In this document: positions 33,670 through 42,481 of the stretch, piece by piece
How the letters are laid out: the number at the start of each line of letters is the position of its first letter
Position numbering within the stretch: the first letter of the stretch is position 1
Origin: Blastocladiella emersonii ATCC 22665
Taxonomy: Eukaryota > Fungi > Blastocladiomycota
Assembly (NCBI GenBank): GCA_025594325.1
Contig: JANHCV010000001.1
Coordinates: 4,712,001-4,776,000, forward strand
DNA: 64,000 bases
Direction of reading: 5' to 3'
Position numbers and translations under genes: made by a program
Notes under the pieces: model-generated
The model's database searches: none
Told to the model about the DNA's origin: nothing
What the model saw: the letters and a program-made list of their open reading frames with translations, nothing else

Positions 33670-35049
33670 ATGGGCCGCAAGGACACCAACGCCCCCGTCA
33701 AGGCCGCCGCCTCGGTCGTGAACGCGCAGCAGCGCCCCGAGTCGGCCGCCATTGCCGCCAAGCAGCAGCAGGCGCAGGCCAAGCCCGCCGCCGCGCAGGC
33801 GCAGAAGCAGGGCTCGCGCCCCGCGTCGCCCTCGAAGGAGGCCTCGTCGGCCCAGAAGCCGGCCTCGCCCGCGAAGCAGCAGCAGCAGGCGTCGCCCGCT
33901 AAGCAGCAGCAGCAGGCGTCGCCCGCTAAGCAGCAGCAGCAGGCTTCGCCCGCTAAGCAGCAGCAGGCCGCCCCCGCGCAGGCCAAACCCGCCTCGCCCG
34001 CCAAGCAGGCCGCCGCCGCGCCCGCCAAGCAGGCCGCCGCGCCCGCCAAGCAGCAGGAGGCCCAGAAGCCCGTCCAGCAGCAGGCCCAGAAGCCCGTGTC
34101 GCGCCCCGCGTCGCCGACCAAGGACATGGCCGCCCCCGCCAAGCAGCTCGCGTCGCCCGCGAAGCAGCAGCAGCAGGCCGCGCCCGCCAAGCAGGCGGCC
34201 CCCGCCTCGCCCCCGAAGCAGGCCGCCGCCGCCGCGCCCGTCCAGGCCAAGCCGACCTCCGCGACGGCCTCGCCCGCCAAGCAGCAGGCGCAGGCGTCGC
34301 CCGCCAAGGCCACCCCCGTCCAGGCGAAGCCGGCCTCGGCGCAGGCGTCGCCCGCTAAGCAGCAGCAGCAGCAGCAGGCCGCGAAGCCGGCGTCCCGCCC
34401 GGCCTCGCCCACCAAGGACACGGCCGCGCCCGCTAAGCAGCAGCAGCAGCAGGCCCAGAAGCCCGCGCCCGCCTCGCCCGCCTCGCCCGGCAAGCAGCAG
34501 CAGGCCACGCCCGTCCAGGCAAAGCCCGCCTCGGCGTCGGCGTCGCCCGCCAAGCAGCAGCAGGCTGCCGCCCCCGCTGCGAAGCAGCAGCAGCAGCAGC
34601 AGGCCCAGAAGCCGGCGTCCCGCCCCGCGTCGCCCACCAAGGATACGGCCGCGCCCGCCAAGCAGCAGCAGGCCGCCACCAAGCCGGCGTCGCCCGCCAA
34701 GCAGGCTGCCCCCGCGCCCGCGCAGGCTAAGCCGGCGTCGGCGTCGGCGTCGCCCGCGAAGCAGCAGGCCGCGGCCCCCGCCGCCAAGCAGCAGCAGCAG
34801 CAGCAGCAGGCGCAGAAGCAGGGCTCGCGCCCCGCTTCGCCCACCAAGGACGCGCCCGCCAAGCAGCAGCAGCAGCAGCAGAAGGCCTCGCCGACCAAGG
34901 AGACCGAGAAGGCCAAGAACCGCCCCGCTTCGCCTTCGAAGCAGGCCGACAAGCCGCAGGCCTCGAAGGAGAAGCACTCCGCTCAGCAGCAAAACTCGAA
35001 GCCCATCGTCCAGCCCGCTCAGCGCGGCTCGGGCAAGTCGGCCCAGTAA
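33670..35049 (+). CDS. Low-complexity Ala/Gln/Pro/Lys/Ser protein with about 20 S-P-x-K repeats
   Basis: Good start context CCACCATGG. Codon use matches the host (CAG, AAG, GCC, CCC, TCG). Stop-free single ORF with recurrent [KR]PASP[AT]K and polyQ. Confidence 0.8.
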   Translation: MGRKDTNAPVKAAASVVNAQQRPESAAIAAKQQQAQAKPAAAQAQKQGSRPASPSKEASSAQKPASPAKQQQQASPAKQQQQASPAKQQQQASPAKQQQAAPAQAKPASPAKQAAAAPAKQAAAPAKQQEAQKPVQQQAQKPVSRPASPTKDMAAPAKQLASPAKQQQQAAPAKQAAPASPPKQAAAAAPVQAKPTSATASPAKQQAQASPAKATPVQAKPASAQASPAKQQQQQQAAKPASRPASPTKDTAAPAKQQQQQAQKPAPASPASPGKQQQATPVQAKPASASASPAKQQQAAAPAAKQQQQQQAQKPASRPASPTKDTAAPAKQQQAATKPASPAKQAAPAPAQAKPASASASPAKQQAAAPAAKQQQQQQQAQKQGSRPASPTKDAPAKQQQQQQKASPTKETEKAKNRPASPSKQADKPQASKEKHSAQQQNSKPIVQPAQRGSGKSAQ

Positions 35050-35466
35050 GTGTCGCTGTCGCCGTCGTGTGTATGAGCTCATTCCCATATTGTTGGCGAT
35101 ATATTGTTGATGATCTTGTAATGGTCTCGCATGTGTTCTCTGAGCGGAAGGCGAAAATTCCCAAGCTTGGTGATGGCACGAGTGATGGACGACGAGCTCT
35201 AACCGCTTGTTTAAGCTTAGGCGCACTATCTCATATCATTTTTGCCCGATCGCGGCTGCCCGAAAGGGACATGCGAGAATAGCGTGAAGAGAGTAGTTTG
35301 TTGATGTATGTATTGACCGCGAATCCCCGGCTGCATCAATCAAATATTTCCCGCCGCGCTGTGGGCGGGTCAGCAATGCAATGGTACAAATGGTGGTACC
35401 GCGACGCCCGGGGGTCGGCCCCGTTGGCGACGAAGGTGGTGCTTGTTGAGCTGCGGAAGGAATGTG

Positions 35467-36750
35467 TCACTGCCCGCCGACGAGTGACAGCGAGCGCGAC
35501 GGCGACAATGACGACGCAGTTGAAGACGCGCGCGAGGTCGTAGACGGCGATGGTGGTGGCGAGGGTGCCTCGTCCGTTGCTGACACAACGAGCGGCACGG
35601 GGCGAGGCCGGCCGGCGATCTCGAGCATGTCGAGCGCGTTCATGGCGATGTTCAAACACGCGTTGAGGTCACGGTGGTAGTGGAACTTGCAGCACGGGCA
35701 CGACTTGTCGCGCCACGAGCCCGTCTGGACCAGGTTGCACTCGCCGCGCGCCGCCGCCGGATCGGTCATGGAGCACGCCGCACACCGCTTGGATGAGTAA
35801 CACTCGTTGATCATGTACACGGGGATCCTGTTCTTGCGCAGCGTGCGCACGAGCTCCTTGACGGGGCCCGAGTGATGGGCCGGCGCGCTGGCAAAGTCGG
35901 TCGCGTGCCCGATGAGGAAGATGACGCGGCGGCCCTCGAACCCGCGGGCCGCGTTAACGAGCTCGGCAAAGTACCGCTGCCGCTCCGACTTGACGTTGGC
36001 CTTCGTGCGCATCAGCTTCTCCTGGGCGCCGAACTTGATCATCTCGGGCGCCGCCGCGGTGCGCGCCGCCGCCATGGCGCCCAGGTCGCCCGTCGCGCTC
36101 GCGTTGCCCAGCTCAGCGTACAGGGCGTCCATGCCGCCCTCGTGCTCCCACTCGCGGCGGCACGCCTGCAGATTGTTGCTGCCCGCGCGTGGTGAGGCAA
36201 GGCGCTGGAGACCATGCCCGAGCGCTGCTTGCCTCGGATCGACTTGGTCCGGATGGTCTCGTCGTTCTCTCGCAAGTCAGCCTGGGAAACGATTGTTGCA
36301 AAGTTGAGATATATATTGTCAATGTTTACGTTAAAGCCCTTGTTGTTCGTAGAATTGTTGAGAAGCGACTCTGCTGATGGCGCGGTTGATGCTTGAGCGG
36401 AGCGCCCCCAACGCGTTCTGGGACGCGTTGGCTATGGTGATGGCTGTGACAGCCCGCCGAAGCCAGCCCACTGAACATCTCGGTCGACCGCTTCTGCTCT
36501 CCCCAACTGCAGCCCACGAATGTAAGCTACGAAGCCGTGTCTTGCGGCAGTTATCGCAACGCGCGCCGACGACGGGCTCGCCACCGCTAACGACAACTTG
36601 AGCGCGAAACGGAGTCCAAGGTGTGATGTCGCTCGTCAGCGGTTCCTCCCACGAGTCTCGCCCTTCTCACTCAGTCTGCCTTGTAACTCGTACAGCACGT
36701 TCTGCGGGACACTTTTGCCATCCACGGCCGCGCGCCAGTCCCATTGCAGC
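35467..36750 (-). pseudogene. Fanzor1/TnpB-like nuclease, C-terminal half (WED end, RuvC-I/II/III, zinc finger), frameshifted
   Basis: ORF 35467..36132 has IFLIG..KELVRTLRKNRIPVYMINECYSSKRCAAC..CPCC..HRDLNACLNI, matching the Fanzor/TnpB DExxTSxxCxxC..CxxC..RDxNAxxN pattern. Another frame upstream gives FNVNIDNIYLNFATIV, a candidate RuvC-I with the Asp codon at 36320-36318. AVDGKSV near 36725 may be the TDGxSV motif. Confidence 0.82.
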
Positions 36751-36780
36751 ACGCCAGCGACGACGATCACGACCAACGAG

Positions 36781-38125
36781 GGGTACGCCCTCGAACCTGT
36801 GCTCGACCTCCGCAGCGCGGCCGCCTCCTCACACAGTCCGCACCGCTGCCTGTAGCCGGGCGCTGGCTTCGTGTGCACACACAAGCGGCCCACGCGGACG
36901 CCCGACGAGCTGCCCGGGCCCGGCGAGTAGCAGACGGGCACGGACTGCAAGTCGACCGTCATCATGCCCATCATCGAGTCCTTCCGCGGCGGGAAGCAGG
37001 GCCGCAAGCTGAAGCAGCGCGTGCGCGACGTGCACCGCCGCGCCACCACCATCGGCAACAACCTCAACGTGCTCCTCTAGCTCTACGCCGTCGAATGCGT
37101 GCGCGTGGGTCGCGTCGAATTCGTGGAGATCTTCACCCTCGACCGCATCAAGTACGCCATGTTGCTCGTGTCGTGCGGGCTCGACATCACGGCGGGCCAG
37201 GACGACCTCATGGACCTCGCCTTTGCGCGCTACGCCGACTCGCTTCCTGACGGGCGCCACCACAAGTTTGCCAAGTGTAACGGCATCCGCCGCGTGCTCG
37301 ACCTCCTCGCCGGCGACCTGTTCAAGGACCTGCGCCACCGTTACAAGCCCATGGCGTGGAAGACGGTCGGCGACGTGGCCAAGGCCCTGGTCCGCCGCGA
37401 GACCATCGAGTTCTACGGCGCCGTCTACCGCGGACCCGTCATGGACCATCCAGACCTTCGCACCGGCGAGGAGATTGTCGCCATGGACTTCACTGAGCGG
37501 ATTGTCGAGCAGGTCCTCGGGGCACGGGTCGACGTGCCGATCCTGCCGTGCGAGCCGCTCTCACCTTCCTCCTCGAGCGGTTTGCCCCGATGCCCATTGA
37601 CGAGAGCTTGTTCCTCCCGCCCGACGACTCGCCGCCCGTGTTCGCGTGCACCGAGTACTTTGCTCAGTTCGACGCGCCGCTGATCCCGCCGTCTGAACCC
37701 ATTGACGTGCTGCCCAACATCGCCGTCCCGCTGCAGCCACCACGTCCCCCGCCGATACCCGCGCACTACCCACCACCGCAAGACCTCGACGATCCCGAGT
37801 CCTGGGACTGGCGATTCGGCCCCGTCCCATGGGTGCCCGCCGAGTTCCGCGTCACCAAGCGCCAGAAGCGCAAGCGGGTCGCGCAGCGGATCGCTGACGT
37901 GCGGCGCGACGCGGGTTTCCTCGACGACGTGACGCGCGACACCAACGGCATCTTCCACGTCGACTGGCTCAACCGGATCCACCGCCTCAGCAACCTCATC
38001 ACCGAGTACAAGACGGCAAGACGCTTGGCTTGCTCGCGCCGTCGTTCCCGCTCCCCGCGCTCGTGCCCGAATTCACGCGCGTGATTCAGCAGCAGGTTTC
38101 CAAGTTCGCTGGCGAGGGACACTAA
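36781..38125 (+). pseudogene. Fanzor1 N-terminal (REC/WED-start) half, opposite strand, with in-frame stops and frameshifts
   Basis: The frame at 36901 reads KSTVIMPII..LKQRVRDVHRRATTIGNNLNVLL*LYAV..FTLDRIKYAMLLVS..LAFARYAD..CNGIRRVLDLLAGDLFKDLRHRY, resembling the recalled Fanzor1 REC helices. TAG stops at 36853, 36928 and 37078. Frameshifts near 37560 and 38010. The final LLAPSFPLPALVPEFTRV resembles the FSxxPxRxSxIPxxIxID motif. Confidence 0.6.
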
Positions 38126-38551
38126 GTGCCGGTGTATGGGCTGATTCCCCTTTGATAATGGAAATAAATTGTCGAGGGCTAAAGCCCTCTTTCTAGACCG
38201 GGTCGCTGCCGGATAGGGTGCCGACGCTCACGTGAGCGCCATGCACGTGAGCGACCCGAAAACGCGTGACAGACGCGTCGTTTCTCATGTGACTGCTGTG
38301 GCGCAACGCGTCCTGGCCTTGCACGTGATCGGCCTCGGCCCAACCCGCGGAAGCGCCGCGCGGCGCCAACCACTCAAGGGCGAGCGGAGCGCGTTGCACC
38401 GACTCGCGTGCTTCGCGAGCTTCTGAGTTCAAGAGGATCAGAGCGATGTGAACGTAGGAGAACGAAAAGTATATCTTTGTGCGGGAGGAAACAAGAGTCT
38501 GCGCGAGTCTGCGCGAGGGGAATGAACAGAGTCGGGGCGGGAGCGAGTGCA

Positions 38552-39400
38552 TCAGGTCGACGAGGACAGGCGGCCGCTGCGGCGCCGCTTGGGCTGCGCC
38601 TCGTGCTCGTCGTTGACGACGCACTCCTCGTGCTCCTCCTCGGCGGCCGCGGCGGCGGTCGCCGCCGTGCGCTTCGTCGCGTTGGCGGTAGACGTCGGGA
38701 CACCGGCTTGGTCGTCACCGATGGCGGGGGGCGTGCACGCCGCAAGCGCCGCGGTTGTCGGAGCCGCAGCTGCGGCCGCGTCGTCCATGTCGCACCCGAC
38801 CGACACGGAGTTCGAGTCCGGCACCCCCACGACGATCTTGTCGATGCTGCCAATCGCGATGAACGAGTGCGTCCAAATGGGGTCCGCGCAGCTCGGGAAG
38901 CCGCCGTACTTCTTGGTGCCGGTGTTCTTGCCGCCGGCGTTCTTGGTGTTGGCGGGCGAGTTGATGGCGGGCGACACGACAGCGGGCGGCTGGATCGCGT
39001 GCTCCTGCGTCACGGGCGCCGCGGCGGGCGAGACGACGGCGGCCGAGATGTCGACGGGCTGCTGGATCGTGAGCTGCTGCGCCGCGGGTTCCGCGGCAAT
39101 CGAGGCGGCGACCTGCTGCACACCGTGACCAGCGGCGCCCGATGCGACGCCGTTTGCCGCGGCGCGGGCGGCCTGGTGCGCGGCGAGGTTGTTGACAAAG
39201 TTCTCGCGGCCGTCGCGCATGCACTCGTGGTACACCTCCGTGGCCTCGTTGAGCTCGGCCCGCATGCACTTCATCGTGCGCGGCACGCCTGCCGAGGTGA
39301 AGGCCTCGTCGCCGGGGAAGCCCGGGTCGTCGTCGGATTCTGACGAGTCCGACGCGTTCACGTCGCAGAGGAACCGCGGCCGCGGCGGTGCCGTCAGCGT
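38552..39400 (-). CDS. Hypothetical ORF inside the Helitron-like element, probably 5'-truncated
   Basis: About 270+ open codons with host-like GC3 and an NLS-like end (PKRRRSGR). There is no ATG at the 5' end of the open frame; the first ATG is at TMKCM. No family recognised. Confidence 0.45.
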   Translation of the reverse strand, partial: TLTAPPRPRFLCDVNASDSSESDDDPGFPGDEAFTSAGVPRTMKCMRAELNEATEVYHECMRDGRENFVNNLAAHQAARAAANGVASGAAGHGVQQVAASIAAEPAAQQLTIQQPVDISAAVVSPAAAPVTQEHAIQPPAVVSPAINSPANTKNAGGKNTGTKKYGGFPSCADPIWTHSFIAIGSIDKIVVGVPDSNSVSVGCDMDDAAAAAAPTTAALAACTPPAIGDDQAGVPTSTANATKRTAATAAAAAEEEHEECVVNDEHEAQPKRRRSGRLSSST

Positions 39401-39419
39401 CGCGCGAGCCGGACCCGTG

Positions 39420-42109
39420 CTTGGCGTCGTCGGTCAGTCGGAGAACGACATTGCTCTCGACCCAACTATCATCAACTCGGACGTGGAGGGCATCCTGGCC
39501 GACGACGGCGAAAACGAGGCGAACCTCGAGCGCATCGAGAGCGTGACCTCTACGCTGATCCCTGGAATGGGCCACGGCATGATGGGCACCCTGCTCTTCC
39601 CCGACGTGCAGCCGTTCGATGTCAACGCCGCGCCGCCGCCGCCGTACCTCGAGACGCCCATCTCGCCGACTGACGTCGAGAAGATCATGGCTCAACTATG
39701 CGCTGCCGCGGCTCAAGGTCATCCGACCGCGGATGTCGGCGCCGTACCTGTCGTTCCCGGGCCCGGGCAGCCACCCATGATCGGTATTGTTCCCGCAGTG
39801 CCATCTGGAGCCTCGACAAACACATCTCAGCATGGTATCGACCCGGAAATGGCCGTCGACGTGCCCGAACCAGAACTCGGACCAGCCGTTGACGTTTGGC
39901 GCAGCGCATTCACGACCACGCCAACGGATCCTGACGCGCGCGCGCGGTTCCTCGTCACCAAGGCCGCGCACTCAATCAGCAACTTTGCCTACGACACACG
40001 CGGCGACGAGTGGAGCGACGAGAAGCAGCGCACTGTGCACACGCCCGCGTACGCGAGCCTCGCGCAGGTCTCGCTCAAGTTCAACCTCAACGAAGAGCAG
40101 CACCGCGCGTTCGTGCTCTTCCTCATGCCGCTCATCGACACCTTCATCGGCGGCAACGCGGGTATCGCAGACGCTGCGGCCTTGGCCGAGCAGAACGTGA
40201 TCCTGTTGGGCCGCGACGACGTCCAACATGTCGTCGGCACCGCGGCCCTCCCGCCCATGAGCAAGGACCGGACGCCGATCATCCTCACCGGCTCGGGCGG
40301 CACGGGCAAGTCGCGCGTCGTCGATGCAATCCGATACTTCCTCGCGTCCTGGAACCGGGAAAAGTGCCTCATGGTCATGGCCATGACCGGGATCGCGGCC
40401 GCCAACATTCGCGGTACGACCATCCACGCCGCGTTCTCTTTCTCGCTAAGGCCGAAAGGAAACAGCCCGGATGTGGCCCGTTTGCGTACCGATCCTGCGG
40501 TTGTCATCGCGTGGAAAGGGCGTCTCGGCGTCGTCATCGACGAGTTCTCCATGTGCGACGCGACTTTACTAGGCCGTATCGACGCGAACCTGCGCCTCCT
40601 GCGGCGGTGCGACGAACCATTTGGCGGGTGCATCGTCGTGCCGGCGATCATTTACAGCTGCCTCCCGTCAACGGAACTGCCCTGTACAAGGTGCCCGCCG
40701 TGCTCAACGACGCGCCGGACTCGTTCTACCTGCGCATGACGTCAAATCAATTGACGGTCCCCGAGCACGTGGATCGAGGCCAGGTCGCGTACTGGCGCGC
40801 TACACGCGCTGTTCGTCTCGTGAAGAGCAACCGATTTGTCGACGATCCACCATGGGGCAACGAAATGGACGCGCTCCGCCTCGTCGAGGCGTCGGACACG
40901 CTGTGCGACCTGATCAACTCGCGTACGACCACTCAGCTTCAGCAGCAGGTCGACGAAAACGGCAACAACGTCCTCAAGGAGATCCTCAAGCAGCCCGGAC
41001 TCACGGTTATCGCGCCCGACAACCACACGCGCCACGCCTTCAACCTGCTCTACACGCGGCTCGCAGCAGCAAACCCGAACCGCATCGTGTTCCAGTTCAA
41101 GGGCAACATCACGCGCCCGCGTGATAGGCGCCGCACGCGTGAACGCGTCGCTATCTGCGACAAGGACGTGTTCCGCCTTGGAGGAGAGCCAGAAACCACG
41201 ACTGAACTGCCGGCCATCCTCGAGCTCTTCGTCGGAATGGAGATGCGCGTCAAGACCAACCAGTGCGTAGCAAAGGGGTGCGCGAACGGTGCGGTTGGCG
41301 TCGTGCACCACATCGACTGGAAGCCCGAGACCACGTTTACGCGAACCGCGTCCAACATGTACCGGCCATCCTGCGCTCCACTCAACGTGTGGATCGACCT
41401 GCCCGACGCTCCTTGTGGCCCTCGCTTCCCGGGCATGCCGGCCGCGTGGCCTGACACGGTCATCCCGCTTGCCGTGGAGAAGAAGGACCTCCTGTACATG
41501 GCGGGCGGTTCCCCGTCGCGAGAGCGGGTCGTCAGCACAACGGGGGATTCGCTCCCACTCTGTGTCAACAACACCAAGACCAACAGGAGCAAGTATCCTA
41601 ATCATGTCGTCGCGCACATCGAGCAGTAATCGATGGTACCAGCCTTCGCCATGACGGTCCACGGGGTTCAAGGCGGGACCAAGAACGCCATCGCCCTGGC
41701 AGATCCCCGTCCCGCGGGCATGGAGCGTCTCATCAGCGGCGCTTCCCTGTACGTGGCGTTATCGCGGCTTCGTCGTTCAAAGTACCTGTGGGTGCTTCAG
41801 CCGATCCCAAGAGTCGTGCTCAAGTCCATGAAGCCGGATCCACTCGCAGTGGCCGAGGACAAGCGGCTCCAGATGCTCGACGAGCTGACCAAGACCGCTT
41901 TCGATCAAGGTACAACCATCGCACCAGGCGACCCGCGCATCGCCAAGCTCTTCGACGACGCGATTCTCTTCTCGCGCCAGCACGCGGCTGAGAAGCTAGT
42001 CGCCAAGCGCGCGTCAGATGCTCTCGACGCAAGGTTTCGGCGATTGGCCAACAAACGTGCTGGAGGCGAGGACGGCTTACAGAACGCCAAGAAACAGAAA
42101 ACACAGTAG
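39420..42109 (+). pseudogene. PIF1-family (Helitron-type) SF1B helicase, disrupted
   Basis: FNLNEEQHRAF, Walker A GSGGTGKS (about 40290), MTGIAAANIRGTTIH, IDEFSM, GDHLQLPPV, PAFAMTVHGVQG and LYVALSR. Frameshift at about 40640 and in-frame TAA at 41627-41629. Confidence 0.9.
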
Positions 42110-42481
42110 AGTATTAACGTAGTGTATTCCATCATCTAATCCGTCAATAGCACGATTTCCATAGCTCGATCACCTAAATCTCCTGTGCGGGACGCACGGG
42201 ACAGCACCTCCACCAGTCGTGCACCATACGTGGCGGGGGCTTTAGCCCTCGATTGAAAACCAAACGCGAAGCGTTTAGGTGCCTCAAGTATAATACTAGC
42301 GAGCGAGCGAGGTTGCGACGCGTCCGGGTGCGGGACAGGGTGCGAGACGCGTTTCGAGTCACGGTTTTTGTCATGTGATGCTGCTCAGCCGCTCCGCTCG
42401 CTCCTCGCGCTCGGCGGCCCTGCATCGCGGCCGTGTGGGCTCATGTCGCCGACCCACCGACAATGCAGCACCTGGCCCACC

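Follow-up and report, generated by a model that had tools for sequence, protein, structure and literature searches.

A probable Fanzor1 pseudogene relic in Blastocladiella emersonii and its diverged full-length paralogues

Fanzors are eukaryotic RNA-guided DNA-cutting enzymes. In a 64-kb stretch of DNA, here called the window, from the water fungus Blastocladiella emersonii ATCC 22665 (assembly GCA_025594325.1, 5.1-Mb contig JANHCV010000001.1), a minus-strand locus is very probably what remains of a dead Fanzor1 gene: its back half, now a 5'-truncated and frameshifted pseudogene relic. The contig belongs to a eukaryotic nuclear genome, as is expected of a Fanzor1, and the same assembly holds at least 13 further genes of the same kind, most of them deeply diverged from one another.

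The visible part of the relic is a 221-amino-acid ORF (35467-36132, minus strand; P0001), annotated in the assembly as a single-exon gene carrying PF07282. It comprises a helical linker, the RuvC-II strands, the TNB domain with its zinc ribbon, and RuvC-III, followed by a Ser/Pro tail of low complexity. A previous sequence-only reading had called this ORF a Fanzor/TnpB module on the strength of the motifs IFLIG, RKNRIPVYMINECYSSKRCAAC, CPCC, and HRDLNACLNI, all of which we find in it, and had placed the catalytic Glu (GAG, 35805-35803) and Asp (GAC, 35670-35668) codons exactly where they are. PF07282 (Cas12f1-like TNB; OrfB_Zn_ribbon) matches the ORF with an E value of 2.3e-9 and 37.7 bits, above its curated gathering cutoff of 26.3 bits, and our family profile scores the ORF region at 191.6 bits. 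When 1.84 billion representative proteins were searched exhaustively with HMMER, only 41 matched at an E value of at most 1e-3, the best of them 33 to 37% identical to the ORF; every one of the 10 relatives that we scanned carries PF07282.

In an alignment with 18 relatives, the columns of Glu110, Cys117, Cys145, Cys148, Asp155, and Asn157 are invariant and those of Gly75, Ser114, Cys120, Arg154, Ala158, and Asn161 are nearly so; the ORF keeps all 12. Gly75 (codon 35908-35910) lies in IFLIG, at the canonical position of the RuvC-II glutamate, and Glu110 (codon 35803-35805) lies in MINECYSSK, as the relocated RuvC-II glutamate. The zinc ribbon (35689-35784) has the CxxC...CxxC form, with Cys117 and Cys120 in CAAC and Cys145 and Cys148 in CPCC, and Asp155 (codon 35668-35670) is the RuvC-III aspartate, set in HRDLNACLNI in agreement with the (D/H)RDxNAA pattern. 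An AlphaFold model built from the 18-relative alignment covers the C-terminal half of the fold alone, with a mean pLDDT of 78, and each of the 44 best-ranked PDB chains that Foldseek matches to it is a Cas12f, TnpB, Fanzor, or other Cas12 chain. The two checks that had been proposed for the module, a profile search and a structure prediction, thus agree: PF07282 is found, and the model resembles solely the RuvC/zinc-ribbon structures of Cas12f, TnpB, and Fanzor. The ORF is a module of the TnpB/Fanzor/Cas12 superfamily, comprising RuvC and TNB elements.

The assignment to Fanzor1 comes from the family as a whole. As a single-sequence query, the 221-amino-acid ORF reached no solved Fanzor, including SpuFz1 of Spizellomyces punctatus (PDB 8GKH; PMC10432273). 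The profile of the family alignment (A1) places SpuFz1 first (8gkh, E = 4.9e-13), followed by the Fanzor1 proteins of Guillardia theta (GtFz1) and Parasitella parasitica (PpFz1), and the profile of the full-length family (A2) again places SpuFz1 first (E = 6.5e-13). This second match aligns over profile positions 6 to 320 and 374 to 580 of 596, and so over nearly all of the protein; the RuvC-I strand is covered, as is the WED motif "F.GSI.TDG". The family and SpuFz1 therefore share one order of elements, running from the WED motif through RuvC-I, the "tG...W" linker, a Gly-type RuvC-II, the relocated Glu, and the zinc ribbon to the RuvC-III Asp. The host of SpuFz1 is likewise a zoosporic fungus, and Fz1 has been described as widespread in fungi (Saito et al., PMC10432273). 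The proteins of G. theta and P. parasitica (PDB 9CER and 9CF0) are weaker matches than SpuFz1 (E = 3.7e-7 and 2.6e-6, respectively) and much larger proteins, and both are also found by Foldseek. With Fanzor2 (mimivirus ApmFz2, 9B0L), ISDra2 TnpB (8BF8, 8H1J), and Cas12f, the family has the zinc ribbon and RuvC-III module in common, yet the profile matches stop short of the linker and the N-terminal parts; for Fanzor2 and TnpB they cover the last 60 to 70 residues only. Judged by profiles at the family level, the relic's family is closer to Fanzor1 than to Fanzor2 or TnpB.

The RuvC-II region provides a second link to Fanzors. Jiang et al. (PMC10530073) reported that Fanzors have Gly or Pro in place of the canonical RuvC-II Glu, with an alternative Glu some 45 residues further downstream. 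In the relic, the spacing between Gly75 and Glu110 is 35 residues. In 8gkh, the counterpart of Glu110 in the alignment is residue 935 of the MBP-fusion chain, which corresponds to E541 of SpuFz1, and E541 coordinates two magnesium ions together with D383, N385, and D606 (Saito et al. 2023, PMC10432273). Gly75 and Glu110 thus match the published Fanzor rearrangement, Gly75 being the inert glycine typical of Fanzors; ISDra2 TnpB and Cas12f, in contrast, retain the canonical RuvC-II glutamate (PMC10530073).

Unlike SpuFz1, the Blastocladiella relic is a back half only, and a frameshifted one. The frame-1 stretch homologous to the family (35470-36186, minus strand) matches positions 334 to 535 of the 584-position profile and begins upstream of the annotated ATG of the ORF, and the choice of that ATG is therefore arbitrary. 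A frameshift within the range predicted earlier (about 36180-36210) was recovered, and continuous homology through the SSxxFHH motif narrows it to 36187-36188, in the GC run "gcgcgggc" on the minus strand, as judged by an X-bridged profile score and by family spacing. Two nucleotides lie between the last homologous codon of frame 2 (His) and the first of frame 1 (Ala), which is equivalent to the loss of 1 nt from one codon. Placing an X at the break lifts the profile score from 191.6 to 198.9 bits and extends the start of the alignment from profile position 334 to 317. Upstream of the break, frame-2 homology extends for only about 16 codons, through the stretch RGKQRSGMVSSALPHH (36189-36236, minus strand), which corresponds to the family motif "isSkefHH" and is the last upstream homology that the X-bridged profile detects. 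Taken together, frame 2 (ending in VSSALPHH) and frame 1 (AGSNNLQACRREW) give an ungapped alignment with the family motif SSxxFHHxxG(10)W. Pairing "IRTKSIRGKQRSG" with the "tG" motif of the family is incorrect; the "SSALPHH/AG" alignment takes its place.

Logan contigs from four runs of the same sample, which are possibly the assembly's own source, show zero differences from the assembly over 35300-37300, and on the basis of this agreement we regard the frameshift as real DNA and not an assembly slip. An intron could also produce the change of frame: a 47-nt GT...AG interval (approximately 36213-36167) would likewise switch frame 2 to frame 1, and the gene would be intact across a spliceosomal intron. 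This is extremely unlikely, however, as the residues SSALPHH (frame 2) and AGSNNLQ (frame 1) inside the putative intron match the family at precisely the family's distances, and none of the three paralogues that we mapped has an intron in the nuclease core. The frameshift at 36187-36188, together with the loss of the front half, leaves no intact Fanzor1 ORF at the locus.

The front half is missing from the whole window. Profile positions 1 to 316 (WED/REC) have no match when all 64 kb are translated in six frames, no TDG WED motif was found in the window, and tblastn with relatives found no front half there. Since WED/REC homology is absent from both strands, the copy is truncated as well as frameshifted: its 5' end has lost the WED/REC half entirely, a stretch of more than 300 profile positions. 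The earlier description of a decayed copy consequently stands, but its "one frameshift" understates the damage. As a counterpoint, front halves are poorly conserved in the family, and the profiles could miss a remnant that has diverged strongly.

One place where such a remnant might be sought is the plus strand at 36600-38130, where an inversion that split the gene could have left the front half. The plus strand there does have a protein-like frame interrupted by stops, and in the best hhalign segment "...RTGEEIVAMDFTE" is paired with the RuvC-I strand of the family. This pairing, however, has an hhalign probability of 0.4% and a P value of 0.15 over 15 columns; the N-terminal model has no profile match on either strand, the "TDG" WED motif is absent, tblastn with 40 relatives finds nothing at 36600-38130, and the ORF located there, H9P43_001807, is an orphan without homologues. 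An inversion is accordingly highly improbable, and we retain 5' truncation as the explanation. The plus-strand frame itself spans 36600-38235, is protein-like, and has three in-frame stops upstream of the orphan gene H9P43_001807 (327 amino acids). No homologue of this frame was found among 5.8 billion proteins, and neither Pfam nor the Atlas has a match for it; the frame may be left over from an uncharacterized mobile-element gene.

Between the last detectable homology and the missing front half, the RuvC-I aspartate would be expected, and the sequence-only reading had identified it in the string FNVNIDNIYLNFATIV, which we do find in frame 2 (Asp codon 36320-36318). Its assignment as RuvC-I is unsupported. 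The candidate string, in its wider context VNIDNIYLNFATIV, obtains no positive score with a full, short-hairpin, regional, or motif-only HMM and falls below zero in a 24-column matrix. Its score over 15 columns is equaled by 204 of 3,000 shuffles that keep local composition and frame (6.8%, p ~0.07), and it lacks the Pro-Gly that is near-invariant in the family. It is also located in an AT-rich patch of 71 bp (36290-36360, minus strand) with 34% GC in a genome of 69% GC, and base composition accounts for a translation rich in N, I, and Y. The string may be a heavily mutated remnant or noncoding.

These results bear directly on whether the locus could instead be a near-complete compact RuvC core, with RuvC-I surviving in frame 2 (NVNID...) and the frameshift as the sole lesion of the nuclease core. 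The pattern ID....N....V occurs once in 128,000 six-frame positions of the window, and that occurrence has the correct strand and frame. The family logo is matched by its Thr at +8 and by its hydrophobic residues at +6 and +10, the distance to the SSxxFHH motif is a plausible one (37 codons, with relatives ranging from 21 to 64), and a paralogue, P0003, is likewise annotated from just before RuvC-I. Against this stand the nonpositive scores in all HMMs and in the 24-column matrix, the 6.8% of composition-preserving shuffles that score equally well, the absence of a Pro-Gly present in nearly all relatives, and the AT-rich setting, in which an N/I/Y-rich string follows from composition. The pattern was, moreover, set post hoc, with the sequence already seen, and WED/REC would be absent even if the RuvC-I motif were genuine. 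We therefore consider a surviving compact core doubtful and continue to treat the locus as the back half of a pseudogene. As a separate observation, the AT-rich patch at 36290-36360 is sharp and coincides exactly with the point at which the Fanzor homology stops; the patch might mark the junction of the truncation, a promoter, or the end of an element.

An intact member of the family would be an endonuclease that cuts double-strand DNA under the guidance of an omega-RNA. The guide RNA and the heteroduplex would be held by its WED/REC front half, and DNA would be cut by a split RuvC composed of the RuvC-I Asp, the relocated Glu, and the RuvC-III Asp, together with the CxxC...CxxC zinc ribbon. 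Of these parts, the relic retains the zinc ribbon, Asp155, and the relocated Glu110, along with the linker helices and the RuvC-II strand in which Gly replaces Glu, and it has lost the guide-binding half and, as far as can be demonstrated, the RuvC-I aspartate. Because of these losses the relic is incapable of RNA-guided nuclease action, and we infer that the 221-amino-acid ORF has no function. Its ancestor was presumably an active mobile-element nuclease.

The conserved positions of the C-terminal half are nevertheless undecayed, which would fit a recent truncation or some retained function as well. The ORF might, for example, be a live, domesticated small protein in which a zinc ribbon and half a RuvC serve a non-nuclease role: it is annotated as a gene, contains PF07282, has every conserved residue intact, and lies in a frame that is open over 269 codons (36276-35470, stop to stop). 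Long open frames are, however, common on both strands of DNA with 69% GC, so that openness is not evidence of selection, and homology that continues upstream of the ATG and across a frameshift has the look of a truncated pseudogene. No orthologue or close paralogue of similar length is present among 5.8 billion proteins. A split RuvC fold is unlikely to be stable when only half of it is there. The same 5.8 billion proteins include no close homologues of the relic with which selection could be tested. Domestication of the half protein is thus improbable, and a pseudogene relic remains our preferred reading.

The relic is located in a lower-GC stretch, at approximately 35 to 44 kb of the window. 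Between 35000 and 44000, GC content is 61 to 67%, compared to 69 to 76% on either side, and this interval spans the relic, the orphan ORF, and a helicase element, a pattern suggestive of old insertions clustered between two host genes. The neighboring plus-strand gene at 33670-35049 encodes a long low-complexity protein with ASPAKQQQ-type repeats. The helicase element is 4.1 kb long and is bounded by a perfect 16-bp inverted repeat (38172-38187 and 42237-42252; TCGAGGGCTAAAGCCC and GGGCTTTAGCCCTCGA). It contains a PIF1-like helicase in more than one frame (ORFs 39189-40739, 40010-41629, and 41633-42109) and a further minus-strand ORF at 38552-39361, and no Rep/HUH domain was detected in it.

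Fanzors are carried by diverse eukaryotic transposons, Helitrons among them, as the sequence-only reading noted. The relic lies outside the helicase element, and its carriage by a Helitron or another transposon is therefore unsupported; we also found no convincing repeats flanking the relic. Comparison of the 35.1- to 43.7-kb island with three paralogue loci by tblastn and blastn showed the nuclease half alone to be in common. A Fanzor1 would have its omega-RNA encoded at, or overlapping, the 3' end of the ORF; at the relic, the predicted fold of 35230-35560 is no better than that of shuffles (z = -0.84), there are no close copies for covariation, and Rfam gives no match.

The closest relatives of the relic are in its own genome. 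Thirteen annotated "hypothetical proteins" of the same assembly (P0002 to P0008, P0010 to P0014, and P0016) are among the closest matches and constitute its nearest relatives in 1.84 billion proteins; the remaining matches come from metagenome contigs and the aphelid Amoeboaphelidium. Used in a word-indexed search, the alignment of the full-length family retrieved nothing but the query itself. Each of the 13 paralogues represents a separate 50%-identity cluster, and most pairs are 25 to 46% identical, the exceptions being two pairs of a fragment and a full-length protein (81% and 92%). The relic itself has no relative above 37% identity. The proposals that a divergent Fanzor family exists in this fungal lineage and that intact copies occur elsewhere in the genome are both borne out, the first by these 13 paralogues and the second by apparently intact full-length proteins, eight of which, included in A2, share an invariant Asp-Glu-Asp triad.

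Among the paralogues, H9P43_004874 (P0004, 639 amino acids, single exon), H9P43_002944 (P0005), and H9P43_006016 (P0007), all annotated as hypothetical proteins, share the motifs and spacing of the relic at 25 to 37% identity but, unlike it, are full length, with WED/REC and the D-E-D triad. The three paralogue loci that we inspected lie among housekeeping genes, with no transposase called nearby. P0003 (JANHCV010000004.1, L002:4001-5026) has an annotated start just before RuvC-I ("MGFNV...IDPGVNNF") and no WED/REC, with a neighboring gene about 220 bp upstream, making it a second front-truncated copy; GFNV, from its first residues, also occurs just before the candidate RuvC-I string of the relic, possibly by chance. 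In P0014 (H9P43_004178, 881 amino acids), the RuvC-I Asp is replaced by Leu (VVMLPG) and the Glu and the RuvC-III Asp are kept; to judge from these residues, it may be a nuclease-dead member of the family.

The pattern of divergence differs from that described in Spizellomyces, where SpuFz1 copies share about 82% identity and have 30-nt inverted repeats on either side (Saito et al. 2023, PMC10432273). The Blastocladiella paralogues, in contrast, are mostly far less similar pairwise, and the relic has no detected flanking repeats. We tentatively propose that B. emersonii possesses a lineage-specific and anciently diversified Fanzor1 subfamily, of at least 14 members counting genes and relics together, that has been either domesticated or kept by an unrecognized carrier, with the relic as one of its fossils; we consider this somewhat less likely than not.

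The relic itself matters little, as it cannot work, and its value is as a pointer to the 13 B. emersonii "hypothetical proteins" of Fanzor1 type. Blastocladiella, Allomyces, and Catenaria are absent from the supplementary tables of the Saito 2023 and Yoon 2023 Fanzor surveys, in the portions of those tables that were accessible. Judging by their conserved residues, the apparently intact paralogues, such as H9P43_004874, are candidate new RNA-guided nucleases from a very GC-rich eukaryote. The deep divergence of a Fanzor1-like set inside one genome contrasts with the young, near-identical copies of Spizellomyces. The family to which the relic belongs, Fanzor1, is already known, and the wider point is the deeply diverged and partly apparently intact set that Blastocladiella carries.
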